DNA of 64,000 nucleotides from Macrostomum lignano. Lineage: Eukaryota. The DNA lies in contig NIVC01001503.1 of the NCBI GenBank assembly GCA_002269645.1, forward strand, positions 1 to 64,000, in the 5' to 3' direction. Of the stretch, positions 880 to 63,700 are shown piece after piece (the first letter of the stretch is position 1; every line of letters starts with the position of its first letter). The notes under the pieces were generated by a model. The model was not told the DNA's origin. It did not search any database and saw nothing but the letters and a program-made list of their open reading frames with translations. Made by a program: the position numbers and the translations under genes.

Positions 880-1445
880 ACTATGGATAAAGGGAAATCC
901 CTGTTGCTATGCGACTGGTGGTATTTACTGTAGCTAAGGGGAATCCCGGTTGCTGTTTGACTGAGATTTACTGTAGCTAAAGGGAATCCCAGTTTCTATG
1001 TGACTGGGATTTACTGTAGCTAAAGGGGAATCCCTGTTGCTATGTGACTGGAGTTTACTGTAGCTAAAGGGGAATCCCGGTTGCTATGTGACTAGGATTT
1101 ACTGTAGCTAAAGGGGAATCCCTGTTGCTATGTGACTGGGGTTTACTGTAGCTAAAGGGGAATCCCTGTTGCTATGTGACTGGGGTTTACTGTAGCTAAA
1201 GGGGAATCCCGGTTGCTATGTGACTAGTGGTGTTTACTGTAGCTAAAGGGAATCCCTGTTGCTATTCTATGTGACTGGGGTTTACTGTAGCTAAAGGGGA
1301 ATCCCTGTTGCTATGTGACTGGTTTACTGTAGCTAAGGGGAATCCCTGTTGCTATGTGACTGGGTTTACTGTAGCTAAGGGGAATCCCTGTTGCTATGTG
1401 ACTGGGATTTACTGTAGCTAACGGAATCCCGGTTGCTATGTGACA
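880..1445. repeat. Minisatellite, 42-44 bp unit (gggatttactgtagctaaaggggaatccctgttgctatgtgact)
   Basis: About 13 tandem units. The unit is a dimer of related ~22-mers (ctgtagcta/ctgttgcta). It begins about 40 bp past the Sec24 stop. Confidence 0.95.
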
Positions 1446-1483
1446 AGCGATCGCGTCTCTAAAAGAATCCCATTAGTCTCGCA

Positions 1484-4400
1484 TTACCCAAGAACATGTT
1501 TCTGCAAGTACTGAAGAAATTCCAAATAGGACATGCTCGAATCTGTCCGATCCTCAATCAGATACGGCGTCAGGGCAGCCATCGAAGCAGCTGACGAGGT
1601 CAGTTTCAATTTAACCACCGAACGAGGCCGGGTCGATCGGCGCGCAGTCGGTCGGAAAAGCGCGCGCCCTCGTCGCTAGCAGTTGAGCAGCTTCAGCCGA
1701 GCCGGTGGACGGTGGCAAGACTAAGAAAATCTTTAGCCCAGCATCCAGTAGGTAGGTTCCGCCCGGCTCCATCTGGCTGGCGCTCGGATGCAGACGAGGC
1801 GGCGATGATGGAGGCTGGGAGGCTGGCTGCTTGGAATCTGTTTCCGCTGGCTGTGGCCACAGGTGCAAGGCGTATAGTGAGGGCAGCAGCTGCTGCAGCA
1901 GGGAGCACAGCGGGCTGGTTCGCAACTGAAGCCGAGAATAATGCATTTGAGACGTGAGTGGCGAGTGCAATTCGTTCTTCATGTGTTGGTTGCTAAGAGA
2001 CGGTTGCAAACGGGTTGTTTCCTAAGGAGATGGCTGCTAATGGTTGTTTTCTAAAGGTTTGGTTGCTATGAGACCGTTGCTACTGGTTTGGTTGCTAAGA
2101 AACTGTTGCTACTGGTTTGGTTGCTAAGAGATGGTTGCTAGTATGTTGGTTGCTAAGAGATGGTTGCTAAGAGACCATTACTACTAGTTTGGTTGCTAAG
2201 AGACGGGTCCACGACAATTGACTGCCACAAAATGACTGCGGACAAAATGACTGCGGAGCAATTTGACTGCCGACAATTTGACTGCCGACAAAATGACTGC
2301 GGCAATTTGACTGCCGACAAAATGACTGCGGCAATTTGACTGCCGACAAAATGACTGCGGAGCAATTTGACTGCCGACAAAATGACTGCGGAGCAATTTG
2401 ACTGCCGACAAAATGACTGCGGAGCAATTTGACTGCCGACAATTTGACTGCCGACAAAATGACTGCGGAGCAATTTGACTGCCGACAATTTGACTGCCGA
2501 CAAAATGACTGCGGAGCAATTTGACTGCCGACAAAATGACTGCGGAGCAATTTGACTGCCGACAATTTGACTGCCGACAAAATGACTGCGGAGCAATTTG
2601 ACTGCCGACAATTTGACTGCCGACAAAATGACTGCGAAGCAATTTAACTGCCGACAATTTGACTGCCGACAAAATGACTGCGGAGCAATTTGACTGCCGA
2701 CAATTTGACTGCCGACAAAATGACTGCGGAGCAATTTAACTGCCGACAAAATGACTGCGGAGCAATTTGACTGCGGACAAAATGACTGCGGACAAAATGA
2801 CTGCGGACAAAATGACTGCGGACAAAATGACTGCGGACAAAATGACTGCGGACAAAATGACTGCGGACAAAATGACTGCGGACAAAATGACTGCGGACAA
2901 AATGACTGCGGACAAAATGACTGCGGACAAAATGACTGCGGACAAAATGACTGCGGACAAAATGACTGCGGACAAAATGACTGCGGACAAAATGACTGCG
3001 GACAAAATGACTGCGGACAAAATGACTGCGGACAAAATGACTGCGGACAAAATGACTGCGGCAGTTTGACTGCCGACAAAATGACTGCCAAAAATGACTG
3101 GCGACAAAATGACTGCCAAAAATGACTGGCGACAAAATGACTGCCAAAAATGACTGGCGACAAAATGACTGCCAAAAAACACTCCAGGCTCTGACCGTAT
3201 TTATGCAAGGCTAGCAATGCTTTTTACATGAGCAAAAATGCAAGCTACATTTGGCTTTCAACAATTCGTGCATGTATATCTACTAGTAAAATTAGAAGCG
3301 TCATGTCAAAAAAGAGAAGCGAAGTCATGTCAAACATAAAAGGCGTCAAGTAAAACATAAAAGAAACTTCATCAAACATAAAAGCAGCGTAAGGTAACAC
3401 ATAGAAGAAACGTAATCTAAAATATAAAGGAAGCGTCATTTAAAAATGTTGACATCTTGGGATGCTAAGGCTTACGGCGGCAATTGCTGCGATTTCGAGG
3501 CTTACTGGGGAATTGCTAAGATGTCAAGTCTTACAACGGGGAATTGCTGAGATGTCAAGACAAATAGGATATACATTAATAATTTTCGTCTCTTGCTTGT
3601 TGGCCGCCCCGAAGGGGGCGCAGGATTGCTACCAATGTTCAAACTGATCTTTTGCATGTAGCTGTGTTTAATGAATGCTGTTTATAGAGTTTTTTTTCTC
3701 CCATGTCATATTAATCTCATACTTGAATCTTATTGATTCTTTCAGATTTTTAAAAAATGTCACATACTCGTCCTATCAGAAAAGCTTTATTAGGCCTAGT
3801 CAAAGCTAAAGTTAATGATACGCTAGCGCGCGGCTATAGCTATATAAAGAGCATTCATGGAACACAGCTTCATGTGGAGGATCCGTTTGAACATTAGTAG
3901 ATATACATGCACGAATTGTTGAAAGCCAAATGTAGCTTGCATTTTTGTTCATGTAAAAAGCATTGCTAGCCTTGCATAAATACGGTCAGAGCCTGGAGTG
4001 TTTTTTTGGCAGTCATTTTGTCCGCAGTCATTTTGTCCGCAGTCATTTTTGGCAGTCATTTTGTCCGCAGTCATTTTTGGCAGTCATTTTGTCCGCAGTC
4101 ATTTTTGGCAGTCATTTTGTCCGCAGTCATTTTGTCGGCAGTCATTTTGTCCGCAGTCATTTTGTCCGCAGTCATTTTTGGCAGTCATTTTGTCCGCAGT
4201 CATTTTGTCGGCAGTCATTTTGTCCGCAGTCATTTTGTCGGAAGTCAAATTGTCGGAAGTCAAATTTTCGGAAGTCAAATTGTCGAAAGTCAAATTGTCG
4301 GCAGTCAAATTGTCGGCAGTCAAATTGTCGGCAGTCATTTTGTCGGAAGTCAAATTGTCGGCAGTCAAATTGTCGGCAGTCAAATTGTCGGCAGTCATTT

Positions 4401-7400
4401 TGTCCGCAGTCATTTTGTCGGAAGTCAAATTGTCGGAAGTCAAATTGTCCGCAGTCACTTTGTCGGAAGTCAAATTGTCGGAAGTCAAATTGTCAGAAGT
4501 CAAATTGTCCGCAGTCATTTTGTCCGCAGTCATTTTGTCCGCAGTCATTTTGTCCGCAGTCATTTTGTCCGCAGTCATTTTGTCGGAAGTCAAATTGTCG
4601 TAGACCCCTAAGAGACAGTTGCTACTAAGTTGGTTGCTAAGAGACCGTTGCTACTGGGTCGGTTGCTAAGGAGAGCGTTACTAGTGGGTTTTGGGTAAGT
4701 TGCTACTTCAAGTACAGCAAAAGTTTCATTCGTAGGATTGCAACAAAAAATCAGATTACGGGCGCAGCCCCCCCCCACAAAAAATTTACCTCGGCCAAAG
4801 CAGCCGCTCTTTCGTCCAGCTGTCCGACACTGGGCCGGAATGCGGGCCACTTGAGCAGCGCCAGGATCAGCAGCGGCAGCAGTCGAATGTTGGGAGGCGA
4901 CCAGAGGCCACCGGCGCCGCGCTGCCCGGTGGCCCGAGCGTAGGCGGCCAGCGGATCGGCTGCGGCGTTCACCAGCGCGTCGCGAGCGTCCGACAGGCGG
5001 TTGGCGCCGGTTATGATGCGCTCGGCGCCGATTTGCGCCAGAAGGCCGATAATCTTTAATGAAAAGATTCGATTTTGATAATTCGGTTAGGTGAATCGGC
5101 TGTCAAGGATTTGGTGAATGGCTGTTTATGATTTGGTGAATTGCTGTTTACAAATTTGGTGAATGGGCTGTGTTACGATTTGGTGAATGCGCTGTTTATG
5201 ATTTGGTGAATGGGCTGTTTATGATTTGGTGAATGGCTGTTAACGATTTGGTGAATGGGCTGTTTATGATTTGGTGAATGGCTGTTAACGATTTGGTTAA
5301 TGGCTGTTTATGATTTGGTGAATGGGCTGTTTATGATTTGGTGAATGGGCTGTTTACATTTGGTGAATGGCTATTTATGATTTGGTGAATGGGCTGTTTA
5401 TGATTTGGTGAATGGGCTGTTTACATTTGGTGAATGGCTGTTTATGATTTGGTGAATGGGCTGTTTACATTTGGTGAATGGCTGTTTACGATTTGGTTAA
5501 TGGCTGTTTATGATTTGGTGAATGGCTGTTTACGATTTGGTTAATGGCTGTTTATGATTGGGTGAATGGCTGTTTATGATCCAAGTTGCTTGAAAACGGC
5601 AGTCACGCTATCACAGCAGCTTTGAACTTAAAAATATCTCACCGCCCGCTGGTCGGACCCGGCGAACACATCCTCAATCCGGGTAGCAACCGGCAGTCCC
5701 AGCGTGTGCACTCGATCCTCCGCTCGCCCTTCCGCCCAGTGTACAGCAGAGCGGCCTGGAACACCACCGGCTCGCTGGCTCCCGCGGTGCCGGCGCCATC
5801 GCCGACAGCCAGCTGGATGGCGAATCCGGCGTCCGGACTAGCGCAGGGCAGCGCCGCCAAGTCGGTGGCGCGAACGAAACAGGAGCCGTAGAAGGCGGCC
5901 ACGCTGTAGCCGTTTGAGCAGCGGACCCGGAGCACAGCCTGGAGAATTAGGGCGATTCTGGGGTGGTTCAGGGCGATTCCTAGGGTGGTTCAGGGGCGAA
6001 TCTTTGGGATGGTTCAGGGGCGATTCGGAGGGTTATTCAGGGGCGAATCTTTGGGATGGTTCAGGGGCGATTCGGAAGGTTATTCAAAGGCGATTCGGAG
6101 GGTGGGTTCAGGGGCAATTCTGAGGGTTATTCAGAGACGATTCGGAGGGTGGGTTCAGGGGCGATTCGGAGGGTTATTCAGGGACGATTCGGAGGGTTGT
6201 TCAGGGGCGATTCGGAGGGTTATTCAGGGACGATTCGGAGGGTGGTTCAGGGGCGATTCTGAGGGTTATTCAGGGGCGATTCGGAGGGTTATTCAGGGAC
6301 GATTTGGAGGGTGGTTCAGGGGCAATTCTGAGGGTTATTCAGGGCGATTCGGAGGGTTATTCAGGGACGATTCTGAGGGTGGGTTTAGGGGCAATTCTGA
6401 GGGTTATTCAGGAACGATTCCTAGGGTGGTTCAGGGCAATTCATAGGATGGTTCAGGGCGATTCATAGGATGGTTCAGGGCGATTCTTGGCCTCCAAAGC
6501 AATTCCTCAAAGCTATAACAGAGACCTCTAATCCCAGCTTGCGAGTGAGATGCCGGCCAAGATCCGCAGCCAGCCGGTCCGCATCGTCGGGCAGGCGCGG
6601 ATAGCGGTGCACCCGGCCGGAGGAGTACACGGCTATGGGCATGACCGAGGCCAGGTCAGTGTGACCGGGCCCGACGCAGAACAGATCAACAGACAGCTGG
6701 GCGCTGCAACAGTCTAACGCCAGGCGCTTGTAATAGTCAGTGGCCGGCTGGCCAGCCAAGTCGTCCGAGTCTGATCCGGCCGGACCGGACAAGGCGCCGG
6801 GTCCGACTGACGGACGGGAGGCCAGAAACAACAGTAGACGGCCGCCGCTGGACTGGGCGAGTCTGAATACAAGTAAATTGACCGATTAAATACCCGTGTA
6901 TTACTGGCAGTAGGTGGTTAACGAATATCACTGTCACAATTGATGAATGATAGCGACGAAAAGTAAAAAACTGACAGAGATTGACCTGTCCACAAGAGAC
7001 ACAAGACAGTCTACAAGAGACACAGGCCAATCTACAAGAGACACAATGATCGAGCTACAAGAGACACAAGCCAATCTACAAGAGACACAATGATCGAGCT
7101 ACAAGAGACACAAGCCAATCTACAAGAGACACAATGATCAAACTACAAGAGACACAAGCCAATCTACAAGAGACACAATGACCAAGCTACAAGAGACACA
7201 AGCCAATCTACAAGAGACACAATGATCGAGCTACAAGAGACACAAGCCAATCTACAAGAGACACAATGATCAAGCAACCAGAGACACAAGCCAATCTACA
7301 AGAGACACAATGATCAATCTACAAGAGACACAATGATCAAGCAACCAGAGACACAAGCCAATCTACAAGAGACACAATGATCGAGCTACAAGAGACACAA

Positions 7401-10400
7401 GCCAATCTACAAGAGACACAATGATCAAGCTACAAGAGACACAATGATCAAGCTACAAGAGACACAAGCCAATCTATAAGAGACACAATGACCAAGCTAC
7501 AAGAGACACAAGCCAATCTACAAGAGACACAATGATCGAGCTACAAGAGACACAAGCCAATCTACAAGAGACACAATGACCAAGCAACCAGAGACACAAG
7601 CCAATCTACAAGAGACACAATGATCAATCTACAAGAGACACAATGATCAAGCAACCAGAGACACAAGCCAATCTACAAGAGACACAATGATCAAGCAACC
7701 AGAGACACAAGCCAATCTACAAGAGACACAAGCCAATCTACAAGAGACACAATGATCGAGCTACAAGAGACACAAGCCAATCTACAAGAGACACAATGAT
7801 CGAGCTACAAGAGACACAAGCCAATCTACAAGAGACACAATGATCAAGCAACCAGAGACACAAGCCAATTTACAAGAGACACAATGATCGAGCTACAAGA
7901 GACACAAGCCAATCTACAAGAGACACAATGATCGAGCTACAAGAGACACAAGCCAATCTACAAGAGACACAATGATCGAGCTACAAGAGACACAAGCCAA
8001 TCTACAAGAGACACAATGATCGAGCTACAAGAGACACAAGCCAATCTACAAGAGACACAATGATCAAGCAACCAGAGACACAAGTCAATCTACAAGAGAC
8101 ACAATGATCAAGCAACCAGAGACACAAGCCAATCTACAAAGACACAATGATCAAGCTACAAGAGACACAAGCCAATCTACAAGAGACACAATGATCAAGC
8201 TACAAGAGACACAGGCCAATCTACAAGAGACACAATGACTAAGCAGCCAGAGACACACAGGCCAATCTTTAAGACAGACCTGTGAGCTATGGCCAAAGCC
8301 GATCCCAGACAGCAGCCGGGCACCGCAGGGAACTCCAATTCGGGCAGCGATTCCAACAATTCAACGATGGCGTCGCGACATTCGGCCACGGGTACTAGAA
8401 GACCTTCGGGCATTGGTAGGTCCGAATCGCCGTCCAGATCAGGCATGGCCAGCAGGCTGGGACGGGGTCCGTCCAGTTTGTACAGGTGCAGAACGCCATT
8501 GAAGGTGATGACGGCCAGCTGGGTGCGGGTGTCGCCTGGCAGACGGTCCAGACAGCGAAGCAGAGTCTGACTAACCGCAGTCAAGTAGGCAGTTGCCGAC
8601 TTGGCAACGGCCGGGTCTGACGACAGAACCTGGGACACGTCCAGCGCCAGGATGTAGGTTGCGGGCGGCGGCGGCCGAACAGAATACTCCTGGGTGGCGA
8701 TGAATTCCACTGTGCCGTTGCGAATCTCTGGCCGACGGCTCGGGTCGCCGTAGGTCTGCGGGGGCAATAGGTTTCCAGCGGAGCAGTTGTCTTAAAACTA
8801 CTCGGACCAAAATATGAGTTCGTACTGGTCTAGGTGATTCTCTAGAGGGGCTGGGGTCTGCAAACTTTTTTTACCTGAAGGGCCAGATAAAGAATTCAGC
8901 TCATGGCTGCGGGCCAGATGAGAGTACAAGGAGAGAATAAAATATAGACGAGAGACGAGAGAAGAGTAAGGGGAGAGAAGAGAGCTGAGAAGAGGCACAA
9001 ACATTGAGCGGGCCGGATTGCTATTGTGAAGTTTCAAAGGACCCGAGGGACAGATAAAGGGATAAAGGCTAGTTTTCTACCCATTCTAAATGTATAATGT
9101 GGCATCCCGCCGATCTCTGATTGGTGTAGAACGAGTGACAGAACTTGATCTAGGTACAATAGAACATTTATATATAAATACCGTATATGCATAAAAGCGT
9201 TGATCTTAAAGCATTTAAGCGCGTATTATTTTTTTACAAGGTTTCTGCGAAAGTAAAAGTCTGCCTTACCTGGGACATGGGATCATAAAGAAACTCTTCT
9301 GGCAAATCGTTGTCAAGAAAGCAGAGACTGCAGCGCCATCTCTGTTGGCTGGAGAAGCGCACGAAAGGATTAATATAGGCCCGGCAATCTCGGCAGCGAA
9401 CGATGACGTTGGCCTGAATGACTGCCAGGCTGCGCAGATCCTTAAACGGGTGCATTGCCAGGCCTAACGGTAGGCGAGATCGGCGCAACAACTCGGCAGT
9501 GGCCGGCACGGCGTTCATTGTGCAGGACATGACATCCGGATTGCAGTTGGCCTCAGCCGGGAACGAATGGCCCAACGGCGGCGGAGCGACCGTCTCTATG
9601 GGCTCGGAGCCGTGCGTCCGCAGCAGCTGCCGGTCGCGCAGAAGATTCACTGAGTTTTCGCGATGCTGAGCGCTTGCAGTCGACCACTGCGGCTGCTGAA
9701 GCGTCGGCGGCGAAGTCATTTGTCGAGGCATCGGTCCAACGGGCAGCGGCGGCGTCGGCGCTACGAATGGCATTGGTGCTGGCGGCGCGGGGACAAATGA
9801 AGGGGGCGAAGGTGCGGCTGCAGATATTGGATGCATCGGCGGTTCTGGAGGTCCAATAGGCCGATGGCCAGGTGCCGTTGAGCTCGATGGCATCATAGGA
9901 GGTGGCGGAGGTCCAACAGGTTGATGGCCAGGTTGCGGAGGTCCAACAGGTTGATGGCCAGGTGGCGGAGGTCCAACAGGTTGATGGCCAGGTGGCGGAG
10001 GTCCAACAGGTTGATGGCCAGGTGCCGTTGAGCTCGATGGCATCATAGAAGGTGGCAGAGGTCTAACAGGTTGATGGCTAGGTGCCGTTGAGCTCGATGG
10101 CATCATAGGAGGTGGCGGACATCCAACAGGTTGATAGCCAGGTGCCGCTGAGCTCGATGGCATCATAGAAGGTGGCAGAGGTCTAACAGGTTGATGGCTA
10201 GGTGCCGTTGAGCTCGATGGCATCATAGGAGGTGGCGGACATCCAACAGGTTGATAGCCAGGTGCCGCTGAGCTCGATGGCATCATAGGAGGTGGCGGAC
10301 ATCCAACAGGTTGATAGTCAGGTGCCGTTGAGCTCGATGGCATCATAGGAGGTGGCAGAGGTCCAATAGGTTGATAGCCAGGTGCTGCTGAGCTCGATGG

Positions 10401-10922
10401 CATCATTGAGGACTGTGGACCTACATATCGATGGTCAGGTGTTGCTGAGCTACCAATTCTCATCTGGTGTACCTGAGACGTCAAGTTTGCAGCTGCTGTC
10501 TGAGTTGAAGGCACTTCAAATGATGAAACTTGAGGTGGTTGTCTCAACTGAGAAGGGTGTGGAGCTGACACTGAGGAAGATGTTGATGGACAAGGCATTG
10601 AACTTTTTGGCAAATGACTTTGCAGAGGCAATGGAGGTGCAGCCATACCTGCTTGTGCAGATGAGGAATTCAGACCATGCAAGTTCATCTGATTGGGCTG
10701 ATTAGACAACATAGACCTCACAGGTGTTGGATGCAATAAAGAGCCATGAGGAAGTTGTAATGGAGGTGTAGAGGCAAAAATAGGCCTTGTAGGGTTAGCT
10801 GATGTTTGACTTGGCTGAATTTTAGGCATAGTTTCAATAGGCATAAATGATCTAGCTGGCTGAGCTTGAGCAGATGACAATTGAAGGCTCCCATTGGGTC
10901 TTGTTGGTTGCTTTGGCTGCAT
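1484..10922 (-). CDS. SEC24: COPII coat subunit Sec24A/B-like, 6 exons, with apparent frameshifts
   Basis: Exons (minus): 10922-9270, 8755-8280, 6862-6526, 5938-5643, 5053-4790, 1925-1484, all with GT-AG boundaries. Motifs: zinc finger CRDCRAYINPF...WRCSLC, RPPPPATYILALDVS, LRVRCSNG, LLPLLILALLK, C-terminal LIEDRTDSSMSYLEFLQYLQKHVLG*. There is a 1-bp loss at ~5714 and further frame change(s) at ~1610-1740. Confidence 0.92.
2020..2204. repeat. Minisatellite, ~29 bp unit (ggttgctaagagaccgttgctactggttt), resuming at 4608-4700 after the foldback insertion
   Basis: The same unit lies on both sides of the 2205-4607 element, in Sec24 intron 5. Confidence 0.85.
2205..4607. mobile_element. Non-autonomous foldback-type DNA transposon (long TIRs made of 14-15 bp tandem repeats, 9-bp TSD)
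   Basis: Termini gggtccacgacaatt / aattgtcgtagaccc are inverted. TSD ctaagagac at 2196-2204 and 4608-4616. Arms are built of gacaaaatgactgcg / gacaatttgactgcc units. The inner unique inverted repeat (3179-3285 vs 3895-4003) has one mismatch. The ~610 bp spacer has no convincing ORF. Confidence 0.88.
5090..5580. repeat. Minisatellite, 22-23 bp unit (gatttggtgaatgggctgtttat), fills Sec24 intron 4
   Basis: About 22 tandem units between the exon edges at 5053 and 5643. Confidence 0.95.
5945..6485. repeat. Minisatellite, ~23 bp unit (tcaggggcgattcggagggttat), fills Sec24 intron 3
   Basis: Tandem units span nearly the whole 5939-6525 intron. The overlapping ORFs are repeat artefacts. Confidence 0.95.
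6995..8255. repeat. Minisatellite, alternating 21 and 23 bp units (44 bp dimer; ctacaagagacacaagccaat / ctacaagagacacaatgatcgag), Sec24 intron 2
   Basis: About 1.26 kb of tandem units ending about 25 bp from the exon edge at 8280. Confidence 0.95.
8852..9052 (+). mobile_element. hAT-type MITE, partial copy (Sec24 intron 1)
   Basis: It starts tggggtctgcaaacttttt and contains gagcgggccggattgctattgtgaagtttcaaaggacccgaggg, shared with the copies at 15512 and 50657. Confidence 0.75.
9880..10420 (-). repeat. Coding tandem repeat in Sec24 exon 1 (60 bp/20 aa PPPMMPSSSTAPGHQPVGCP and 30 bp/10 aa PPPGHQPVGP)
   Basis: Near-identical 60-bp and 30-bp periods are in frame in the Pro-rich N-terminus. Confidence 0.9.
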
Positions 10923-13893
10923 TCCTCTTATATCTATAGTCTAGATTATATGAATAGCTTTCTGAAAAGTGAATTTATGTTTTTAATCTCGAGTATAAGT
11001 TGTTTCTTTAATCTATGATATGAACAATTATTATTTCATAATTTAAAACCATTTATACTTGTGCTATATAATTTGATATATTTGCACTAGCATAGGCCTA
11101 GGTTTCCCTGTTAGAATTTTTGCTCAAAATGCATAGACGAAAATTAGGATTTTAATATTTATAGTCCCTAATTAAAAGGGATGGCAATAAACATATTGGT
11201 TATTATAATTTTGAGCTACTTTACTATGTAAGGGCCTATCACACAATGCCATAATTGGTGTAATGTAGACTAAAGTACTATAAAACCTTGGTGAAATGCA
11301 ATATATTAGAAAGGCAATAAACATAAAAATGTCAGTTTTTATCAAACTAAATTGCTAGTATAATGCAACATGCCATGCTACAACCTAGCACCCTAGTGCA
11401 ATAATCTTTAGCATGATATGACAAGTGACTAATTAAGTATATGAATAATTTATATAATACTAATCAATTTATCTATCTATGAAAAAGAGGATATAAAAAT
11501 TATTTTCAACAAGAGTGATATTCACATTCACTTCAGTTTGTATTATAATTTTTTCTATAAAATATACCATGTTTATCATAAAATAAATTTTTTTGCTTTA
11601 AATCTTAGATTAACCCAACCGATCAAATCAAAGGAGTTGTAAGAACCTTTCAGTTGAATAGTTTCGAGGTCCAAAAGGGTCTGTCAACTTAGCCTAGGCT
11701 CATAAAGTGGAGCCCGACACCCAAGAAACATATGTACATTGTACACAAATGATACGCTATTCTGCTCACAGTGACACCAGAAAGCTGGACTTGAGAAAAA
11801 AATTACAAAAATTGAACCTGGGATAAAAGAGAACAATCAAGGGGACAATTAGGGACTCCACCTGATAAGCTTAAGTTTACATGATGAATGATAGTAATCA
11901 TTGTTCTTAGAAATTATACTTTTTAAACTAGAAAATATCTTTAGCAGCAACACGTAAATTAGGCTGAAAAAAGTATTCACCAAACATTTTTTAAATACAT
12001 CAAGATTTTTTAGATTTTTTATTTAGTGATGTACAAACAAATAAAATATTTTGTTTTAGCCAACAATTTAAATTATAAAACCGTTGGAAATTTTTTCCAC
12101 CTTAGGCCCCCCCCTCTACTACACTAGTGAAGGCCTAGTGAAGTGGGCTGATTGGCAAATCCAGGGGCCATAGTCCTCTCAGCTAGGATCGAAATAAATC
12201 GCCACATTTTTTCTTGTTCTGACGACTTTTGACCTAATTATACTACTTTTAGTCGCTTTTCGAATGTTGTACTAAGTCCAAGGGCCTATATACTATATTT
12301 GTTGCTTAGGCCGTAGGGCCTATTCTACTATACTAGGTGGGCCTAATTGTTTGCATCATAATTGTTTTGAAATTTTTTTTTAAATTTGATTTTTTATGCA
12401 TATTGGCAAGTTATAAAACCTTTATTTAAATATATAGCATTTAGTAAATTAAATTGACAACTTTTAAACTAGCCAAGGCTAAAGATTTAAGTTATTATTA
12501 TTAAGTCTAAGACTAATTTAACTAATAAAATTTAGTTAATATTAGTTATTTAGTCAGGTAAAATTAATTAAAAGATTTTGATATTATAATTGAGACAAAA
12601 TTGGCTAGGCCTAGGCCTATTAAAATTTCTTAATCCCATCAAATAAGATTGCTAAAAATAATATAATATTTTGTCTTTAGTTTTATAATTTAAGGCTAAC
12701 TTAATTTAGTTTAGTAACTGCAATTAGTTATAATTTAGTTTGGTTTAAAATAGGGTTTAAAAAACTTTTTATCTGTAGTGTAAGGCAAAATAAAGAACCT
12801 AATATTTGATTGATAATTGCAAGCTAGTGTAAGAAAAAGAAAGAGAAGAGACATAAGAAATAGGTAAGAAAGGAAAAACATAACAAGGTAAAAAGTGAGA
12901 AGACTAGGGCCTTAATAAGAGAAAAAAGACGCAAAAAGGAAAGAAAATAGAAAAAAGAGAAAAAAAGCAAAACAAAGAAAGTGTAGATTAGAGAACAAAG
13001 AGCTAAGAAGAAAGGCAAATCTTGAATAAGCCTGATTGCCATTGTAACATTTCAAAGGACTTAAAGGCTGGATAGAATGGCTTTGTAAGCTGCATATGGC
13101 CTATAGGCCATGGCTTTATAAGCTGCATATGGCCTATAGGCTAGAGTCTGCTGACCCTTGGACTTGGTCTATGTTGGCATGGCCTAATGATGATTTCCTA
13201 TTTAATATTCATTTAACCTTTAATGTCTTTTTTGCTCTTTATAATAAAGCTTTCAGTTTTTATATGATAAATTGGTTTCTTTGTCTAATCCTAAAAGAAT
13301 AAAAAAGAGGATGAAAGTACTACAAGAGAATACAATACAATATTTAGGTAGTTAAATAGATATTTAAGGTATTAAATATTTAGATATAAAATATTTAGTA
13401 AAATATTTAGATTTATCAATATAGGTAGGCCTAATGATATATAGTATATACATTTGGCAAAAATTCAATCAAAATTGCTTAAGAATTGCAATCTCTAGAG
13501 CATTATAGACAAGTAAACATACAAACAAATATTAGAGATTTAGTATAACTTTAGTATAACTTTGTTAGTTATTTTAGAAGTCCCATCATAATACTTCTAT
13601 TGGTTTATTAGGCACTTGATAAGACAAGTTATTTCTATTCATGGTTGACAAAGTAACAAGTGTTATATCTTAAATCTTAGGTGAATGTTTTTTATATCAC
13701 AATTGTGTGTCTCTAGAGTTGACAATTTATTTTTAAAAAAATAAAGAGACAAACTTATGGCCATGGAATCTATATATGTAATGTTTGTTTTCCATGGATA
13801 TAATTCTGAGATGTCCTTGTAACTGTAGTTGGCATAATATCCCACTGCAGCTTGTTGCCATATGCTATACAAACACAAATTTCAGGACTCAGA
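10481..13893. other. AT-rich, CpG-depleted domain between divergent Sec24 and NF-YB (probable bidirectional promoter region)
   Basis: About 15 CpG in 3.4 kb by eye. I saw none in 10481-10989 or ~12932-13893. Flanking exons are CpG-dense. Confidence 0.8.
12755..13140 (+). mobile_element. Heavily GC-eroded copy of the hAT-type MITE
   Basis: cttgaataagcctgattgccattgtaacatttcaaaggacttaaaggctgga aligns to cttgagcgggccggattgctattgtgaagtttcaaaggacccgagggccgga of the other copies, mostly by G>A/C>T changes. Confidence 0.7.
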
Positions 13894-14422
13894 CGAGCAC
13901 TCTGGCTCCGGGTTTGGGGCAACGCCAGGCGCGACAGCCAACGCCGGAGGAGGCAGTCTGGACGATGGCCGACCGATTGGCCGGTGCTCGCCAATCCGGG
14001 ACCAGGACCGCTTCCTGCCCATTGCCAACATATCGAAGATTATGAAGCGAACAATACCGGAGACTGGCAAAATCACTAAAGAGGCGAAAGAGTGCGTGCA
14101 AGAGTGTGTGTCCGAGTTTATCTCCTTTGTCACGTCCGAAGCGTCGGACAGATGCCAGGAGGAGAAGCGGAAGACAATGAACGGCGAGGACATCCTGACG
14201 GCGATGCAGGCTGTCGGCCTAGACAGTTACATTGAGCCGCTGAAAGTCTACCTGATGAAGTATCGGGAGGCCAATAAATTGGAGGCGGCCAACGAACGGG
14301 CCGCCAATCCGCAGGGCGGCGGCGGCACCGGAGCAGCGGGCGGAGCCAGCGGCGGTGGCGGTGACGACGGCGCTGTGGGTGGAGGCGGAGCCGGCGGCAC
14401 CGTGTTTGTCTCTTTCAACTGA
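13862..14422 (+). CDS. NFYB: Nuclear transcription factor Y subunit beta (histone fold)
   Basis: [17 protein letters not shown]...[43 protein letters not shown]. The true start is uncertain (acceptor-like tttcag ends at 13885). AATAAA at 14501. Confidence 0.95.
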
Positions 14423-15511: not shown

Positions 15512-15705
15512 TAGAGGTCGGCAAACTTTTTTACCTCAAGGCCAGAGAGAGGAAAGGAGAAGGAATGGAAGATGAGAGGGGAGAGATAGCATGAGAGAAG
15601 AGATAAGAGGAAAGAGAGAGCTGAGAAGAGACAGAAACCTTGAGCGGGCCGGATCGCTATTGTGAAGTTTCAAAGGACTCGAGGGTCGAAGTTTGCCGAC
15701 CTGCT
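15512..15705 (+). mobile_element. hAT-type MITE, short internally deleted copy
   Basis: Inverted ends aggtcggcaaact / agtttgccgacct. The internal sequence is shared with the other copies. No clear TSD. Confidence 0.75.
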
Positions 15706-26088: not shown

Positions 26089-26123
<35 letters not shown>

Positions 26124-50656: not shown

Positions 50657-51222
50657 CAGGGCTCGGCAAACTCCCCGGCCCGTGAAGCCTCTCAATCCGG
50701 CCCTCGGGACCTTTAAATCTTTGCAGTAGCAATCCGGCCCTCGGGTCCTTTGAAACTTCGCAATAGCAATCCGGCCCTCGGGTCCTTTGAAACTTCGCAA
50801 TAGCAATCCGGCCCTCGGGTCCTTTGAAACTTCGCAATAGCAATCCGGCCCTCGGGTCCTTTGAAACTTCGCAATAGCAATCCGGCCCTCGGGTCCTTTG
50901 AAACTTCGCAATAGCAATCCGGCCCTCGGGTCCTTTGAAACTTCGCAATAGCAATCCGGCCCGCTCAAGGTTTGAGCCTCTTCTTATGCAGTTCTTTCTC
51001 TCTCTCACCTCTCCTCTCTGCCCGTCTCTCCTCTCCGTCTCTCTCCTCTCTTCGCTCTCTCTCCTCTTTCCCCTCTGTCCTTTCTCTACTCTCCGATTTT
51101 CTCTCATCTCACCTCTCATATTTTATCATTTCTACTTTCCTCTCTCATTTCCTTTCCATGGCGCGCAGCCATGAGCTGTGTTTTCTATCTGGCCCTTGAG
51201 GCAAAAAGTTTGCAGACCCCTG
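50657..51222 (-). mobile_element. Complete hAT-type MITE with 8-bp TSD and an internal 37-bp tandem amplification
   Basis: TIRs cagggctcggcaaact / agtttgcagacccctg. TSD atctaagc at 50649-50656 and 51223-51230. About 7 copies of gcaatccggccctcgggtcctttgaaacttcgcaata at ~50690-50960. Confidence 0.9.
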
Positions 51223-53027: not shown

Positions 53028-53452
53028 ATTGGGTCAGAGCTGCTCCGAGTGACTCTGCGGTGGGTACAGTGTGGGTCAGAGCTGCTCCGAGTGACTCTGC
53101 GGTGGGTACAGTGTGGGTCAGAGCTGCTCCGAGTGACTCTGCGGTGGGTACAGTGTGGGTCGGAGCTGCTCCAAGTGACTCTGCGGTGGGTACAGTGTGG
53201 GTCGGAGCTGCTCCGAGTGACCCTGCGGTGGGTACAGTGTGGGTCAGAGCTGCTCCGAGTGACCCTGCGGTGGGTACAGTGTGGGTCGGAGCTGCTCCGA
53301 GTGACCCTGCGGTGGGTACAGTGTGGGTCAGAGCTGCTCCGAGTGACCCTGCGGTGGGTACAGTGTGAGTCAGAGCTGCTCCGAGTGACTCTCTGGTTGG
53401 TACAGTGTGGGTCAGAGCTGCTCCGAGTGACTCTGCGGTGGGTACAGTGGGT
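53028..53452. repeat. Minisatellite, 42 bp unit (tgtgggtcagagctgctccgagtgactctgcggtgggtacag)
   Basis: About 10 units. Confidence 0.95.
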
Positions 53453-53814
53453 GTAGAAGTGCATTCGAATAAATTGAAACTATAGGCAGCATTTTCAGTT
53501 TCATCCCAACTGCTCGCGACAGAACCAAGTTCCTCTGGCCGGTGATAAAATTCGAAGATAAAGAGGCCTTCAAGAAGGAGCCTGTGATTTGTGGCTAAAA
53601 ATACGCCGAACTGAAATTGAAACAGCGCTACACCTTCATCGGGCTTTGTGGACCCCCCAATCCCTGATTTTCCGTGGCGGGCAACAGCTGCAAGATTTCC
53701 GGCCATCACCTTGGGACGTGGGTCGTTCCGAATCCTAGAGGGAATATTTCCCTTTTCTCTCTTGGCTATTATTAGGTAATTTTGCGCCTAACCGTTTGGG
53801 GTACGTTTCCCATT

Positions 53815-54890
53815 GCAGATCTGACACAGCTGACCCTGAAATGCTGTTTGTGACATTACAGATCTGACACAGCCACTCTGAAATGCTGTCTGAGGCATTA
53901 CAGATCTGACACAGTTCACTCTGAAATGCTGTCTGAGGCATTACAGATCTGACACAGTTCACTCTGAAATGCTGTCTGAGACATTGCAGATCTGACACAG
54001 CTGACCCTGATCTCCTGTCTGTGACATTGCAGATCTGACACAGCTGACCCTGATCTCCTGTCTGTGACATTGCAGATCTGACACAGCTGACCCTGATCTC
54101 CTGTCTGAGAAATTACAGATCTGACACAGCTGACCCTGAACTCCTGTCTGAGAAATTACAGATCTGACACAGCTGACCCTGAACTCCTGTCTGTGACATT
54201 ACAGATCTGACACAGCTGACCCTGATCTCCTGTCTGTGACATTACAGATCTGACACAGCTGACCCTGATCTCCTGTCTGAGGCATTACAGATCTGACACA
54301 GTTCACTCTGAAATGCTGTCTGAGACATTGCAGATCTGACACAGCTGACCCTGATCTCCTTTCTGAGAAATTACAGATCTGACACAGCTGACCCTGATCT
54401 CCTGTCTGTGACATTGCAGATCTGACACAGCTGACCCTGATCTCCTGTCTGTGACATTGCAGATCTGACACAGCTGACCCTGATCTCCTGTCTGAGAAAT
54501 TACAGATCTGACACAGCTGACCCTGAACTCCTGTCTGAGAAATTACAGATCTGACACAGCTGACCCTGAACTCCTGTCTGTGACATTACAGATCTGACAC
54601 AGCTGACCCTGATCTCCTGTCTGTGACATTACAGATCTGACACAGCTGACCCTGATCTCCTGTCTGTGACATTACAGATCTGACACAGCTGACCCTGATC
54701 TCCTGTCTGTGACATTACAGATCTGACACAGTTTACTCTGAAATGCTGTCTGTGACATTACAGATCTGACACAGCTGACCCTGATCTCCTGTCTGTGACA
54801 TTACAGATCTGACACAGCTAACCCTGATCTCCTGTCTGTGACATTACAGATCTGACACAGCTGACCCTGATCTCCTGTCTGAGAAATTAC
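53815..54890. repeat. Minisatellite, 43 bp unit (cagatctgacacagctgaccctgatctcctgtctgtgacatta) with interleaved variants
   Basis: About 25 units. Two variant types recur in blocks. Confidence 0.95.
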
Positions 54891-55464
54891 ATAGCTCACG
54901 CAGATGACACCTGAGTTTCATTCACATTGACAAAAGCGTAAAAGGTGCGCTCACGAGCGTGCATTGAAATGGCATCTTTTCTGTTCCTTTTTTCTCTCTC
55001 AGTCTGAGCAACCCTATTATAGACGGAATGGCGGGTCCCGAGCATGCCTCCGCCGCATATCTATGACTGAATTCGGTGGATCGAGTCTATAAGAGTGAGG
55101 GAGATCCGGAACCAAGTGCTTAGGAACACGCTCGCACACTCATGCGTGTAATTAGAGTCGGGAGAGAGAGAAGGGGAGATGCAGTCCGAATAATGCAGCA
55201 ATGCAGAGCAATGAATTGAGACGAAGGTGAGACCGAGAGGCTCAACCCCTGGGGCGGGGGGATTCCGTTTCCCCGTGGCCGTCCAGGCCGAGCGGAAAAA
55301 ACAATTAGCGAGCCCGGGGGCCGAGAAGAAAGAAAAATTGTGTCGAAACGCGAGCATGAAAAGTGGAAATCTTGCATCTCGATGGAGGCGCAGATTGGTT
55401 TAGGTGACTGACTGACGGGCAAGTAAGCGCAAACTGCGTTCGTGCGCAAGTTTAGAATGCGGCG

Positions 55465-57654: not shown

Positions 57655-58258
57655 ACACGGCACGAAGACACGAAACAGACATCAGGCATATCAAAAAGAC
57701 ACAAAAACAGACATCAGATATATCTAAAGACACGAAACCAGACATCAGATGTATCTAGAGACACGAAACCAGACATCAGGCATATCATAAAGACACGAAG
57801 CCAGACATCAGACATATCTAAAGACACGAAACCAGACATCAGGCAGATCTAAAGACACGAAACCAGACATCAGATATATCTAAAGACACGAAACCAGACA
57901 TCAGATGTATCTAGAGACACGAAACCAGACATCAGGCATATCATAAAGACACGAAGCCAGACATCAGACATATCTAAAGACACGAAACCAGACATCAGGC
58001 ATATCTAAAGACACGAAACCAGACATCAGGCAGATCTAAAGACACGAAACCAGACATCAGATATATCTAGAGACACAAAACCAGACATCAGACATATCTA
58101 AAGACACGAAAACAGACATCAGACATATCATAAAGACACGAAGCCAGACATCAGGCAGATCTAAAGACACGAAACCAGACATCAGGCAGATCTAAAGACA
58201 CGAAACCAGACATCAGGCAGATCTAAAGACACGAAACCAGACATCAGACATATCTAAA
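57655..58258. repeat. Minisatellite, 31-32 bp unit (aaagacacgaaaccagacatcaggcagatct)
   Basis: About 19 units, ending about 375 bp upstream of the nAChR ATG. Confidence 0.93.
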
Positions 58259-58634
58259 GGCTCAACAAAGCGACGGAAGTCTACAGTAATCTCACAAGGC
58301 GCTCCTCTCCTAGCGTAAGGATCCGGCATCAGCTGCAGAATCAATTCACTCCCCTGGCTACGTCCTGTCGGTGGTAAATCTCCCCCCCCCCACTATCGAG
58401 CAGATGGGGCGCGAAAGCGACACCCAGATGCTGTTTAAGCTGCAGGCGGCACTAACTAACATCGATTGCTGCTGTTTCCTTGAAAGGCGAGCTTCTATTA
58501 CAGACTGGTTAGGTCTCTCTCTCTCTCAGTCTCAGTCTCAGTTTCACAAAGCAGAGTTCGCTGCGAATGCTCCATCGCTCTTTGACCCACCGATTAATCC
58601 TCAATCCCAACTAATATCGATTGGCGCAAGCTCG

Positions 58635-61600
58635 ATGGCCTCCCGCCTCCTGCCCGCAGCTCTCCTCCTGCTGTGCCAGTGGGCGCCGAGGCAGCCAATT
58701 CTAACAGCCGTGTCGGCGCTCGGCCAGCCGCAGATGAAAATGGCGGAGAAGAACCTCATCAAGCAGCTGTTGCAGCACTACGACAAGAAGAGCCGGCCGG
58801 TGATTGACGCCGACCCGCCCTACGGCACGCCTAAAATTGAGCGACGCAAGGAAAAGCACGCAAACTCGTCGACTATACCGATCCAGCAGGTCACGGTTGA
58901 GTTCGGACTCAGGCTGGTACAGATTCTCGATCTGGATGAGATGGAGCAGGTTCTCACCACTAGCATGATATCGCTTTATGTGAGTGCTCGCTACATTCTG
59001 CTTTCAAATTTAGCTCGTTGCATGTTATTCAGGTCTCACACCTATAGCCTACTTATACTTTCCTCTTTACTGTCCTGTCTCGTCTCTTCCTCTTAGTTAT
59101 CTACTCTCCCTCTCATCGCTCTACTCTCCTCTCTGAATTTTCTACTCTCCAATCCCAATTCTTTACCCCTTTCTCTGAATTGTCTACTCTTCCCTCTGAA
59201 TTGTCTACTCTCCCTCTGAATTGTCTACTCTCCCCTCTGAATTGTCTGCTTTCCCTTCAGAATTGTCTACTCTCCCTCAGAATTGTCTACTCTCCCCTCT
59301 GAATTGTCTACTCTCCCTTCAGAATTGTCTACTCTCCCCTCTCATCGTTCTACTCCCCCTTTTGAACTCTTTACTCTACCTTCTATTCATTCTCCTCTCC
59401 TCTTTTCTGAGTTTCAATCGAAGCCTCACTTTCCGGTTCATTGTTTTACAGCCTCGTAGAAATTGGCAGCTCCTGTTTCAGCTTTCAATTTTGCCAAAAA
59501 AAGGAAATTGGAGCAGCACAGCACAGACCAGCCTCTTAATTAATCAAATTAAAACTGCGCAACTCGCCTCTGATTAAAACAAATCAGGCGACCAGATAGA
59601 TGATTCCTTTCCCATTGAATTTAATCGCATCTTTTATTAAGCTTCAGTGCGAATTGAACTGGCTTGCTTGGACTCAAATTTTGTCTCCAGGCGGCAGGGC
59701 TCAATTTATTAAGGGTAGTTTGCTAAAAAAAGATTGAAAATCGACTGGCTATAGGGTTACCTGTTAGCTGCCGAGGATGAGGCAAAACGGCTCAGATTCC
59801 TTCAGTTCCCCTTTTCACCGGGGCTCTTATGATACTCCTCAGCTAGGGTTAGGGTGAGGGTTAGGGTGAGGGTTAGGGTGAGGGTTAGGGTGAGGGTTAG
59901 GGTGAGGGTTAGGGTGAGGGTTAGGGTGAGGGTTAGGGTGAGGGTTAGGGTGAGGGTTAGGGTGAGGGCTAGGGTGAGGGTTGGGGTGAGGGCTAGGGTG
60001 AGGGTTAGGGTGAGGGTTAGGGTGAGGGTTAGGGTGAGGGTTAGGGTGAGGGTTAGGGTGAGGGCTGAAAAAAACAAGTAGGGAAAGCAGCTGACAGAAA
60101 GTGCGGAAAAGTGACGACAAGGCAAAAGATTCTTGCGATCAGTACTTCATCTTTATCTTATCAAGAAGCGAGGCTCTGCTCTCTTCTATCGCATCTCTGA
60201 ACAACCGCTGATGCAATTGTCAGTTTGCTATAAATTTGTAATAGACCTGACAGACAGGCCCGCTGTAGTTATTTTTGACGAACAGTGCGCGGTTCTGCAT
60301 GCTGGCAAATTTCAAATTGCTTTCATCAATTCTGTCAGCAGCTCTTGCTGTGCCTGCTCTCAATAGTGCAATGCCTCATGGCCTATTGCTCTAACTGATT
60401 GCTCACTGTATCTTTATGCATACTCTGAGCTTAATGACTAGTTGAAATGAGCTCACAGCATACACAGCAGCCAGGTATAAGGGAGATACATGCCTTTTTA
60501 CTCATCCCTAACTCCAAAGCATCCTGACACAATGCTAAGCGGTTTACGCGCCACACCAGCTACAGCCATACGTGCATCCGCATGCGCGGCAGCATGGAGT
60601 CAGGAAGCAAAAGCTCAGTTCACAAACAACTGCTCTTTCCTCTAGAAGAGAGGCTTCTACAGAGGCGGGTTGTTTGTTGCAGCAAAAAAGCTGCCAGAAA
60701 TACATTGAGAGAGCGCGGGAGACGGTTGATCAAGTTCAAGTTGAATGCTTCCCCCCTTAATGCAGTGCGGCTTTTGTGTGTCAGCGGGACCTGCTGTGCG
60801 ACAGAAAGAGAGACGGACGGACGGACAGACAGGGCGTGATCGGTAATTTGGGAGGATGAAGGCTCCCGGCAACACTGCTTGCACCATTGAACGCTCGTAT
60901 AAGGGGGGGGGGTAAAATGAATGAATGCGAGAGAGACTGCAGTTGGAAACTAATAAGGAAAACTGGATTTTGTGGAGACTTCGCTACAAAAAAAATAAGT
61001 AACTTCACTGCCGCTGCCAGAACTTCATGCATGCCCAGTACAGGCCGAGGGGACTCCGTTTTAAGAAGCCAATTCTGAGTCCCTACCTATCCCCGAACAG
61101 GGGGGTGCAGTAATCCAAATCCACTCGCTCTCTGCTCTGCGCTACCAATCTGGTCTTAGCTGAACATTTTAATAATAGTTTTATGCCCCCCAGCCAACGC
61201 TCTAATATCGTAATCAAGATCCTAGCGGCTGTATTAAAAATACAGAAGAAGTTGCTGCAATTCGGGAAGCCGATAGGGGAGAGAGAGGGGGGAGAGAGGG
61301 AGGTTCAGAGAACGCTCGAACAGGCAGGCACTCCGAAGCCTGCATACGCAGTCAACTGTGCGTTGCCGGTTCGTGTTTACACGACTATGACCAGGGCCTT
61401 TTTTCTTACTTCTCTCGCTCCCACCTGGTCTGTGGGATCTCTCTGCTGCAAAATACACACAGGCAGCGCACACCTGACAGATTCTGGGGCCAGCTGATAT
61501 CTTCATCATCTATCTAAGCTGCGGCGGCGCCGGAGTCTGGCCATGGGGGAGGGGCGGTACCAGTAGGAAGAGCCGAGGCTTCGGTGTAGATCAGGAAACA

Positions 61601-63128
61601 AACTGATGAAGAATGAGAGTCTGCATTGGCCAAGTGGTTGGGTTAAGAAGTGGGTGGTTTTTTCTAAATCTAAATCCTCAAGTAAAGCTTGCTGGCAGGT
61701 CTGGGCGTGCAGGTCTTGTCCCAACCTCATTTCTATCACTTTTGGCATTATTGGAGGCCCATAAGCCTCGGCAGTTGCAGATGTCCGCCCCGAGGAATAA
61801 TCAATTGGGAAAAGTGAGGGGATAGCGGTTGACAAGGGAGCCGGGGAGGGCTTGAGGAAATAAAGGAAAGTTGGACGGGAGCAAGAGAGAGAGGCAGACG
61901 GCGCCGGAGAAACACGCCGCTGGGGGCGCGAAATCATCATCCCTTGTGAGAGGAAAATTTTTCCCTACTTTTTCCCCGCATCCCACCCCCCCCCTCGATA
62001 CACAGATGGAGACAGATAGATAGAGAGATGTAGACAGGCTTGACGTGGTGCCCAACACGCATAAAAGCGGGGTGTCGCCCTAGCGGAGACTCCCGCTGCG
62101 GCGGGCCATTTGGTCCTAATGAAGTCATAATTGGATTTCCGTTCGCTGTTCGTCGAGTGCCGCCATTGGGGCGCGAGAGAGAGAGAGAGAGAGTGAGAGT
62201 GAGAGGCGAGGACGGGTTCCAAGAGAAGAATGGAGCCGAGAGAGGGAAGGCGAAGGAAATGAATGAAGGCGTGATGGGGGGGCGTCCTGCCGGACCCGGT
62301 GGCGCCCACGGGGACTGTGTTGGGGCTGGCTGGGCGACACTGTCAGGCCACAATGTCGGAGGGTTCGGGTTAGAGGAGGGAGTCCCGCGTGCAGCTGCTG
62401 CTGCACTCTCGGCGTGCCCCCCCGGCCCTCGGCTGCTGCTGCCGCCCCGCTTTTTTGGCATCTTTCTTCCTCTCCGGCCACCGCTTGCATGCCTGTGGGC
62501 GCCTTGGCTGCTGGCAGGCGGCGATCGAGCTCGCTCGCTTACTGTCCCCCACTCTGCTCTCTCTTTCACACCCTGCACCGCTGACCGACTGCCCCCAGTG
62601 CGCTGGATCTCACAGTTGGCTGGCGGGAACTACCGCGAACTGTCCTGAGCTGAGCATCTCTATCTCTCGCCTTCACCCGCGTGATGGGTGAAGCATAATA
62701 CCCCCCCCCCCTTAGTAATTGTGCCACGGATCTGAAGTCGGAACAAGTGCAAAGATGGCTGTTTTTTCTCTCTCTAGTAGGCGTCTGGTCTGGACAGCGG
62801 ACTTCCGCGCAGCATCTTTTTGATGCATTAATCCCTTCATCAGACACTGTGTCATTATGCATGCATTCGGATTCGGACAGTCCCATCTCGGACAGAACTT
62901 CTTGGGAGCAATAGTTCCACACTGACACTTGGAAGCCGATAATGCAGGCTTATCCCAAACAAAATTTAGTTGCTAGAATTTCTATCTAAACCCGCAATCT
63001 CCTATTCCTAATCCGCAGGAGTGGACCGACTACCATCTGCGCTGGGAGCCCGAAGACGAGGATGGCATCATGTTTGTACACATACCCACCAAGGACATCT
63101 GGCTACCCGACATTGCGCTATACAACTA
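58635..63128 (+). CDS. Cys-loop ligand-gated ion channel, nicotinic acetylcholine receptor-like subunit (first two coding exons; gene continues beyond the window)
   Basis: Exon 58635-58979: signal peptide, EKNLIKQLLQHYDKKSRPV, VTVEFGLRLVQILDLDEMEQVLTT, donor GTGAGT. Exon 63019-63128 (110 bp): EWTDYHLRWEP...DIWLPDIALYN, donor GTAAGT. Confidence 0.92.
59130..59340. repeat. Minisatellite, 20-22 bp unit (ctgaattgtctactctcccct), nAChR intron
   Basis: About 9 units in a pyrimidine-rich tract. Confidence 0.85.
59845..60064 (+). repeat. Interstitial telomere-like tract, alternating TTAGGG/TGAGGG (12-bp unit)
   Basis: About 18 copies of gggttagggtga with a few variants. Confidence 0.95.
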
Positions 63129-63599
63129 GTAAGTGACCGCTGACTGGGAGGCTCTGGGGCCAGCGATGGCGCTTTCAGTATCCCTATTGAGAACTGCATG
63201 AGCTGCTCTCCGCGTGTGAATCATTAATGAGCCGGGAGTAGCTATGCGGCTTGAAAATATGACCTCAGCATCCTCCCCCACTCGCCACAAGCCAGCGGAG
63301 TTAGCGGGAGAGATACGTAGAAGATAGGCAAATGGAGCAGTACAGATACTCGTAGTTGGCTGATTCTCATGCATTTATTCAGCATTGTGGTTGGCTTACA
63401 CACCAGGCTGTGTTGTACGACTGCGCGCTGGGCAGCGCAGGATTTTGTTGGCTGTTTTGCCGGGTTTGGTGGCAGCCTTGGAAGAGCAGAAGCCAGCGTT
63501 GCTGTCTGAGCAATGTCTTGAAGAGCAGTCAGATGGAGGAAAACTTGATGACGATTCTGCTTTATTCAGCGATTCATGACAAAGTTGGAAACTGCTTTG

Positions 63600-63700
63600 C
63601 GGCATCATGAAGATGGGAGAGTCTGTGCCAGTGAATGAGAGCTGCGGCATCATGAGGATGGGAGAGTCTGTGTCAGTGAATGAGAGCTGCGGCATCATTC
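63600..63700. repeat. Short tandem repeat, 45 bp unit, ~2.2 copies
   Basis: gcggcatcatga(a/g)gatgggagagtctgtg(c/t)cagtgaatgagagct repeated. Confidence 0.8.

Follow-up and report, generated by a model that had tools for sequence, protein, structure and literature searches.

Classical minisatellites of the variable number of tandem repeats (VNTR) type are built from 10-100-bp units. The tandem arrays analysed here, in bases 1-64000 of contig NIVC01001503.1 of the flatworm Macrostomum lignano (assembly GCA_002269645.1; this 64-kb stretch is called the window below), resemble them in their head-to-tail form, in their variation of copy number and unit, and in their intronic or intergenic setting. 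They differ in density, which at 21.8% of the window (13,950 bp) is unusually high, and, while human hypervariable minisatellites have a common core motif, the window arrays do not. Many of the units are 21-23, 31-33 or 42-45 bp long. The original prediction took these bins, which lie near whole turns of the DNA helix, as a sign of a helical-phase-dependent mechanism; we consider small-sample clustering among ordinary minisatellites the better account, with a probability of roughly 0.58.

Two described systems come close. In Caenorhabditis elegans, 35-bp minisatellites of Helitron elements mutate towards an internal 10-bp A/T periodicity (bioRxiv 10.64898/2026.08.08.743475, a 2026 preprint). 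The periodic An/Tn cluster (PATC) DNA of this nematode and the window are alike in their intronic minisatellites and in the link to the helical repeat that has been proposed for them. However, PATC DNA derives from one transposable element (TE) family, is phased internally in A/T and has a unit of 35 bp, which does not correspond to a whole number of helical repeats, whereas the window units are unrelated to one another, young and without internal phasing, and the claimed signal lies in the unit length itself. Neither an internal ~10-bp A/T periodicity nor an origin from a single Helitron or other TE family characterises the window arrays.

In Drosophila melanogaster, the density of tandem repeats has maxima at 11, 12, 21-24 and 30-36 bp, and a single 11-bp motif, in three closely similar repeat types, accounts for 71-95% of the 11-, 12- and 23-bp classes (PMC3152781). 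The D. melanogaster ACCAGTACGGG family and the window both have classes near 11, 22-24 and 30-36 bp, and two window arrays, 6992_44 and 853_44, are dimeric. The Drosophila classes are dominated by one sequence family, whereas the window families are unrelated and most of their units have no sub-repeat. The bovine 23-bp-based satellite is a hierarchical satellite comparable to the 11/12/23-bp class. Arrays seeded by TEs, either from the heads of short interspersed nuclear elements (SINEs) and miniature inverted-repeat transposable elements (MITEs) or from internal TE segments, resemble only the 18/19-bp and 37-bp arrays of the window, which are off-phase. We found no report on minisatellite periods in the M. 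lignano literature, and unit lengths that follow the helical repeat across unrelated families would, to our knowledge, be the first known case.

With a minimum score of 100, Tandem Repeats Finder (TRF) returned 29 arrays, whose periods range from 12 to 60 bp; the period was taken as the smallest one whose score was at least 70% of that of the best TRF row. All consist of at least two head-to-tail copies of a unit of 10-100 bp (2-63 copies, 79-98% identity); higher-order variants are present, and several arrays have a strand-asymmetric composition. Most are intronic or intergenic. Copies of the locus were found on three further contigs, referred to as homeologs: NIVC01000399.1, with 99.87% identity that is restricted to window 1-18038 and gives way to unrelated sequence beyond; NIVC01002907.1 (~97.5%); and NIVC01001371.1 (~97%). 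The arrays are the following.

853-1444: 44-bp minisatellite, 13.5 copies; a diverged 20+24 dimer (autocorrelation at shift 20) with a strong hairpin (fold z = -5.9); unit 43 bp in homeolog L006.
1985-2203: 29-bp array with a 14+15 sub-period; outer arm, inverted partner of 4608-4683.
2212-3172: 63 copies of a 15-bp unit; paired in inverted orientation with 4008-4600, foldback-like; fold z = -5.0.
3467-3559: 29-bp array, 3 copies; unrelated to the remaining 29-mers.
4008-4683: 15-bp (4008-4600) and 29-bp (4608-4683) arrays, inverted copies of 2212-3172 and 1985-2203.
5090-5580: 22-bp minisatellite, 21.9 copies, with a higher-order unit of 67 bp; intronic in Sec24; 22 bp in every homeolog.
5950-6486: 23-bp minisatellite, 47-bp higher-order unit; unit 22 bp in homeolog L006.
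6992-8268: 44-bp minisatellite, 29 copies; clearly dimeric (21+23), with a ~25-nt core in common with the 33-mer at 39900.
9847-10406, minus strand: coding 30/60-bp repeat, 10/20-amino-acid Pro-rich repeats in Sec24 exon 1.
13077-13141: 33-bp two-copy tandem duplication; single copy in homeologs L001, L005 and L006, hence a recent birth or loss.
16139-16644: 43-bp minisatellite, 11.9 copies; palindrome-rich, fold z = -3.9; unit 41 bp in NIVC01002907.1.
17001-17163: ~33-bp array, 4.9 copies; alone among the units in its strong A/T periodicity of ~10.7 bp within the unit (P = 0.002).
22374-22636: 21-bp minisatellite, 12 copies; inside the range of an annotated gene for 304 amino acids.
24198-24335: 52-bp array, 2.7 copies; 55 bp in homeolog L007, with a 107-bp higher-order unit.
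37132-39032: 18/19-bp array, one array in two parts (37132-37498 and 38798-39032) split by a mariner element; in an intron of an hnRNP K-like gene.
39900-41483: 48 copies of a 33-bp unit and the largest array of the window; intronic in the hnRNP K-like gene.
43667-44010: 33-bp minisatellite, 10.8 copies.
44639-45059: 31-bp minisatellite, 13.6 copies.
45592-46435: 42-bp minisatellite, 20 copies, 98% identity.
46899-47486: 33-bp minisatellite, 17.8 copies.
50693-50962: 37-bp array, 7.3 copies; unit within a dispersed repeat.
53030-53449: 42-bp minisatellite, 10 copies.
53811-54914: 43-bp minisatellite, 25.7 copies.
57665-58259: 31-bp minisatellite, 19 copies.
59084-59406: 21-bp minisatellite, 12 copies; intron 1 of a nicotinic-receptor-like gene.
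59845-60064: 12-bp interstitial telomere-like array, (AGGGTTAGGGTG)n, 18 copies, 97% identity; intron 1 of the nicotinic-receptor-like gene.
63598-63698: 45-bp array, 2.2 copies.

All 18 unit lengths that had been counted by hand in the original prediction were recovered by TRF with essentially the same periods. The picture in which every one of the 18 falls into a bin is true of those arrays but depends on leaving out 11 further ones, namely two of 15 bp, three of 29 bp, the two TRF parts of the 18/19-bp array, the 37-bp array, the 12-bp array and the coding 30/60-bp repeat (both absent from the earlier list altogether), and the two-copy 33-mer at 13077, which would itself fit the bins. Setting aside arrays as TE-derived is not justified under the helical hypothesis, because slippage or retention should ignore the origin of the seed.

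We applied the Rayleigh statistic to the period modulo q, scanning q = 6-16, with uniform or jittered periods as the null. The results for four sets of arrays were as follows.

All TRF rows (n = 29): R = 0.42, P = 0.07-0.10 scan-wide and 0.01-0.016 at fixed q = 10.5-11.
De-duplicated, non-coding set (n = 25; inverted pairs and the mariner-split array collapsed, coding repeat removed): R = 0.55, best q 10.6, scan-wide P ~0.007.
The same set plus 8 short arrays (n = 33): R = 0.46, P = 0.02.
Periods of at least 20 bp (n = 22): R = 0.65, P = 0.0008.

Over q = 10.0-11.0, R hardly changes (0.51-0.55), and q has a very wide bootstrap interval, so that 10.0, 10.5 and 11 cannot be separated by these data. 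Binomial P values ran from 0.02 to 9e-6, moving with the chosen q and tolerance, and are not trustworthy. Unit lengths in the window thus cluster near multiples of ~10.6 bp with P ~0.01, a real but moderate signal that we regard as suggestive; these period statistics describe one 64-kb window, which a pattern-seeking reader had chosen because it looked interesting. Two other sources of the bins were dropped: small-RNA sizes (21-23 and 31-33 nt) amount to numerology with no plausible mechanism, and a quantum of 21.5 bp leaves seven 31-33-bp arrays unaccounted for.

Some 26 independent minisatellite arrays of an ordinary kind occur in the window, as is typical of the tandem-repeat-rich M. lignano genome, in which tandem repeats were annotated as 13.1% (PMC5730564). 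Their copy number continues to change, as does, through small indels, their unit length; those that can be compared between homeologs (window 1-39 kb) are older than the split between the homeologous contigs. On the reading that we prefer, the arrays originated in local tandem duplication and then grew by slippage or unequal exchange, mobile-element sequence having probably provided the seed of a minority (a SINE head, part of a dispersed repeat, a foldback structure). That unit lengths are concentrated near 21-23, 31-33 and 42-45 bp would then be the small-sample clustering to which we give the probability stated above. It looks sharper than it is because off-phase arrays were excluded post hoc, because two of the 44-mers are dimers of ~21-22-bp units and because at least one pair of arrays is related. 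The clustering is not yet evidence for a mechanism that depends on helix phase.

Copy-number and unit variation between the duplicated loci was evident in the homeolog comparison. The 18-bp array measures 602, 534 and 888 bp across homeologs and the 43-bp array has 11.9, 12.9 and 5.9 copies. Unit lengths of orthologous arrays were 43/41/43, 44/44/43, 23/23/22 and 52/55/52. The homeologs of the 33-bp array at 17001 contain variants of 29, 31, 33, 37 and 38 bp, and one 37-bp variant has expanded to 6 copies of 96% identity, from which it follows that off-phase units are not visibly blocked from expansion.

These observations bear on a genuine rule, valid throughout the genome, by which integer multiples of the helical repeat (~10.5 bp, giving ~21, 32, 43 and 53) would be favoured as unit lengths; we think such a rule unlikely. 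It could arise by biased birth, in which nucleosomal DNA would be nicked or broken in a staggered manner on its exposed face, yielding duplications of n turns, or by biased expansion or retention, in which the bends of n-turn units would add up in phase and the units would determine how nucleosomes are set rotationally. The Rayleigh peak at 10.6 bp lies within the physically meaningful range of 10-11, with P = 0.0008-0.02 depending on the inclusion rule, the units are unrelated in sequence, and most length changes between homeologs stay within 2 bp of a bin. Moreover, many arrays lie in introns of expressed-looking genes, as does the helical-period DNA of C. elegans (bioRxiv 10.64898/2026.08.08.743475). 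On the other hand, R is flat over 10.0-11.0 and singles out no specific helical value, the off-phase 37-bp variant expanded, and units shifted from 43 to 41 and from 52 to 55 bp. Off-phase arrays of 15, 18, 29 and 37 bp also thrive within the same window, some with at least 60 copies.

The remaining tests of a helical mechanism were all indirect and of low power. Power at the ~10.6-bp harmonic within in-phase units was not in excess (Fisher P = 0.23 for W, 0.17 for WW and 0.82 for AA/TT), so internal phasing, too, speaks against the helical rule; only 17001_33 and 44639_31 were individually below 0.05. The 22 non-array indels of 8 bp or more that separate the homeologs have lengths of 8-71 bp and show no visible quantisation, another point against it. 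Strong hairpins (z < -3.8) occur in three of the 20 units tested (853_44, 16139_43 and 2212_15). As to binding of a protein on the same face of the helix, which the original prediction had offered as one mechanism, no 5-7-mer is common to the units beyond shuffled controls, and this argues against any one protein. None of the indirect tests gave a positive sign, and the helical-phase mechanism lacks support here without being refuted. That unrelated M. lignano minisatellites are born or expanded preferentially at whole helical turns, under a geometric rule that ignores sequence and is perhaps linked to nucleosomes in transcribed introns, strikes us as doubtful.

The comparison also covered ~15 kb of M. 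lignano sequence not related to the window, comprising 6.4 kb that bear arrays and a further 8.5 kb in which no arrays were found. The array-bearing segment (L004 14148-20537) holds arrays of 38.5-39 bp (1.3 kb), 31 bp (1.7 kb) and 13 bp as well as a purine-rich array of 19/27/34 bp; the 38.5-39-bp array counts against the helical rule in an independent segment.

Comparison of the units in every rotation and on both strands (300 pairs) identified a single related pair, 6992_44 and 39900_33 (z = 7), with a common core of ~25 nt, GCCAATCTACA..GAGACAC. The other 299 pairs are unrelated, and the description of the arrays as sequence-unrelated is therefore largely true.

A different origin of the bins would be hierarchical amplification, in which micro-duplications of ~10-12 bp diverge and are then re-amplified in blocks of 2, 3 or 4, giving units near 21-24, 31-36 and 42-48 bp, with no role for the helix. 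It has a precedent in the 11/12/23-bp family of D. melanogaster (PMC3152781) and agrees with the 21+23 dimer of 6992_44 and the weak 20+24 structure of 853_44. The 42-mer at 53030 and the 43-mer at 53811 likewise have TRF sub-periods of 22-24 bp, at 54-58% match. When TRF was run at a low threshold (score < 100), 26 of the 32 arrays with a period of at least 10 bp had periods of 10-13 bp, as such micro-duplications would predict, but this abundance is partly an effect of the TRF score threshold. Two-copy duplications at low threshold were nearly all of 10-16 bp, the long ones being too few for testing. Self-similarity at shifts of L/n showed no excess in the in-phase units once 6992_44 was left out (Fisher P = 0.50), so that the units do not collectively display the expected structure. 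Nor was a significant 11-bp sub-repeat found in any 31-33-bp unit; the 31-bp unit at 57665 contains AGACA three times (spacing 12+7+12), which was not significant against shuffles. The ~11- and ~22-bp submodules that had been proposed for several units hence hold for 6992_44 (P = 0.002-0.005) and weakly for 853_44, and fail for the rest. We judge hierarchical amplification to be quite improbable as the source of the bins.

The last alternative is that a few minisatellite families borne by mobile elements, each with a fixed unit length, make up the bins. Several arrays do have such connections, and the mobile elements concerned are listed here.

36963-37130, minus strand: tRNA-derived SINE copy whose 5' head seeds the 18-bp array.
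1-117, 14796-15087, 18131-18394, 26209-26409, 35210-35470 and 48338-48487: further tRNA-derived SINE copies, seven in all, of ~260 bp, with A and B boxes visible.
37558-38676, minus strand: mariner with a Mos1-like transposase open reading frame (ORF) of 372 codons, inside the 18/19-bp array on this contig only.

The 18/19-bp array starts exactly at the SINE 5' head and repeats that head. ARAGORN and Rfam scans of the window gave no match, and none of the seven SINE copies was called as a tRNA. In homeologs L007 (673-1206) and L009 (599-1486) the array is uninterrupted and free of mariner, which indicates that the mariner inserted into the array rather than creating it, and that the insertion is recent and specific to this copy. 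The closest protein to its transposase in a collection of 5.8 billion proteins is 65% identical, and the homolog search returned no M. lignano proteins. The 37-bp unit at 50693 is a segment of a dispersed repeat that also occurs at 8946-9055 and 15576-15688. Positions 1985-4683 form a nested inverted structure (29-bp array, 15-bp array, a centre of ~0.8 kb, inverted 15-bp array, inverted 29-bp array) that resembles a foldback element; it is intronic in Sec24 and conserved in every homeolog.

The assertion that the exceptions to the bins derive from TEs or SINEs is borne out for the 18/19-bp array (SINE head) and the 37-bp array (dispersed repeat) and is only plausible for the 15/29-bp foldback structure. 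Together with the core common to 6992_44 and 39900_33, these cases are what mobile-borne families have in their favour. Against them, the in-phase arrays have no dispersed copy, shared flank or TE source within the window, and 299 of the 300 unit pairs are unrelated. Pfam searches of the 10 longest ORFs and of ~5,600 amino acids of other non-array ORFs revealed no Helitron, and the mariner was the only TE protein; the domains found were Sec24, NF-YB-like, KH, mariner and Neur_chan_LBD only. Translated ORFs of the arrays had no match in the protein collection. We consider families of this kind a very remote explanation of the bins.

Several findings weigh against small-sample clustering. The signal is not trivial, with P ~0.0008 and R = 0.65 for periods of at least 20 bp, and among these 22 arrays there is no unit of 24-28, 34-36, 38-41 or 46-51 bp. 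The units are truly unrelated, so common ancestry does not explain the bins, and sub-repeat structure accounts for two or three arrays at most. The replication sample, finally, is tiny: of its two clean minisatellites, one is in phase and the other is not.

If the clustering extended genome-wide, it would point to a mutational process that depends on the geometry of chromatin or of repair, and M. lignano would be a natural system for its study, given the transgenesis tools and the 13% of tandem repeats of this species. If it did not, the window would stand as a documented example of dense, fast-evolving minisatellites in flatworm introns, including a mariner that landed inside an array and a SINE head that became one.

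Genes located in the window include the following.

9234-10922, minus strand: first exon of Sec24, a long ORF, 100% identical to M. lignano PAA54433.1.
13886-14422: NF-YB-like gene, single exon.
~16705-19210: RRM protein gene; the 17001 array is within its span and the 16139 array just upstream.
21594-22906, minus strand: gene for 304 amino acids, containing the 22374 array.
~25597-26696, minus strand: annotated gene for 173 amino acids, whose span includes a (CTG)24.7 run at 26052-26125.
28040-29266, minus strand: FAM78A/B homolog, single exon, 408 amino acids; no Pfam match; relatives in Schistosoma, Lingula, bryozoans, bivalves and fish.
Starting at 36284: hnRNP K-like gene, with the arrays of 37132-41483 inside.

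The arrays of 1985-8268 lie inside a longer Sec24 gene model. The 30/60-bp repeat of Sec24 behaves as a coding tandem repeat, with a period that is a multiple of 3 and a conserved ORF, and its 60-mer is present in 7.9 copies in the window (9847-10406) and in 9.9 copies in L006 (10517-11256). The 22374 array is probably in an intron of its gene, as judged from the gene span against the length of the product. The arrays of 59084-63698 are inside the nicotinic-receptor-like gene; a search with exons of this gene returned one M. lignano UniProt entry, which has no contig assigned to it, and one Paragonimus match only. The Sec24 paralog P0002 was likewise found on none of the contigs, and no gene is called in the 10 kb next to the edges that could be reached. 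None of ten ATG-initiated ORFs from 45-64 kb equals an annotated protein. A search with the FAM78 family retrieved no M. lignano paralogs, and the gene is missing from NIVC01000399.1.

The switch of NIVC01000399.1 to unrelated sequence at window 18038 is abrupt, falls inside the RRM gene and leads into array-rich DNA (L004 14148-20537; L002 1-2888); it is either an assembly chimera or a genuine rearrangement. At the (CTG)24.7 run, the minus-strand frame 25794-26219 reads ~24 glutamines. Window 32000-36000 is an AT-rich block with a GC content of 0.29, compared with ~0.47 elsewhere, and is the part least conserved between homeologs (~94% identity, with unaligned gaps).

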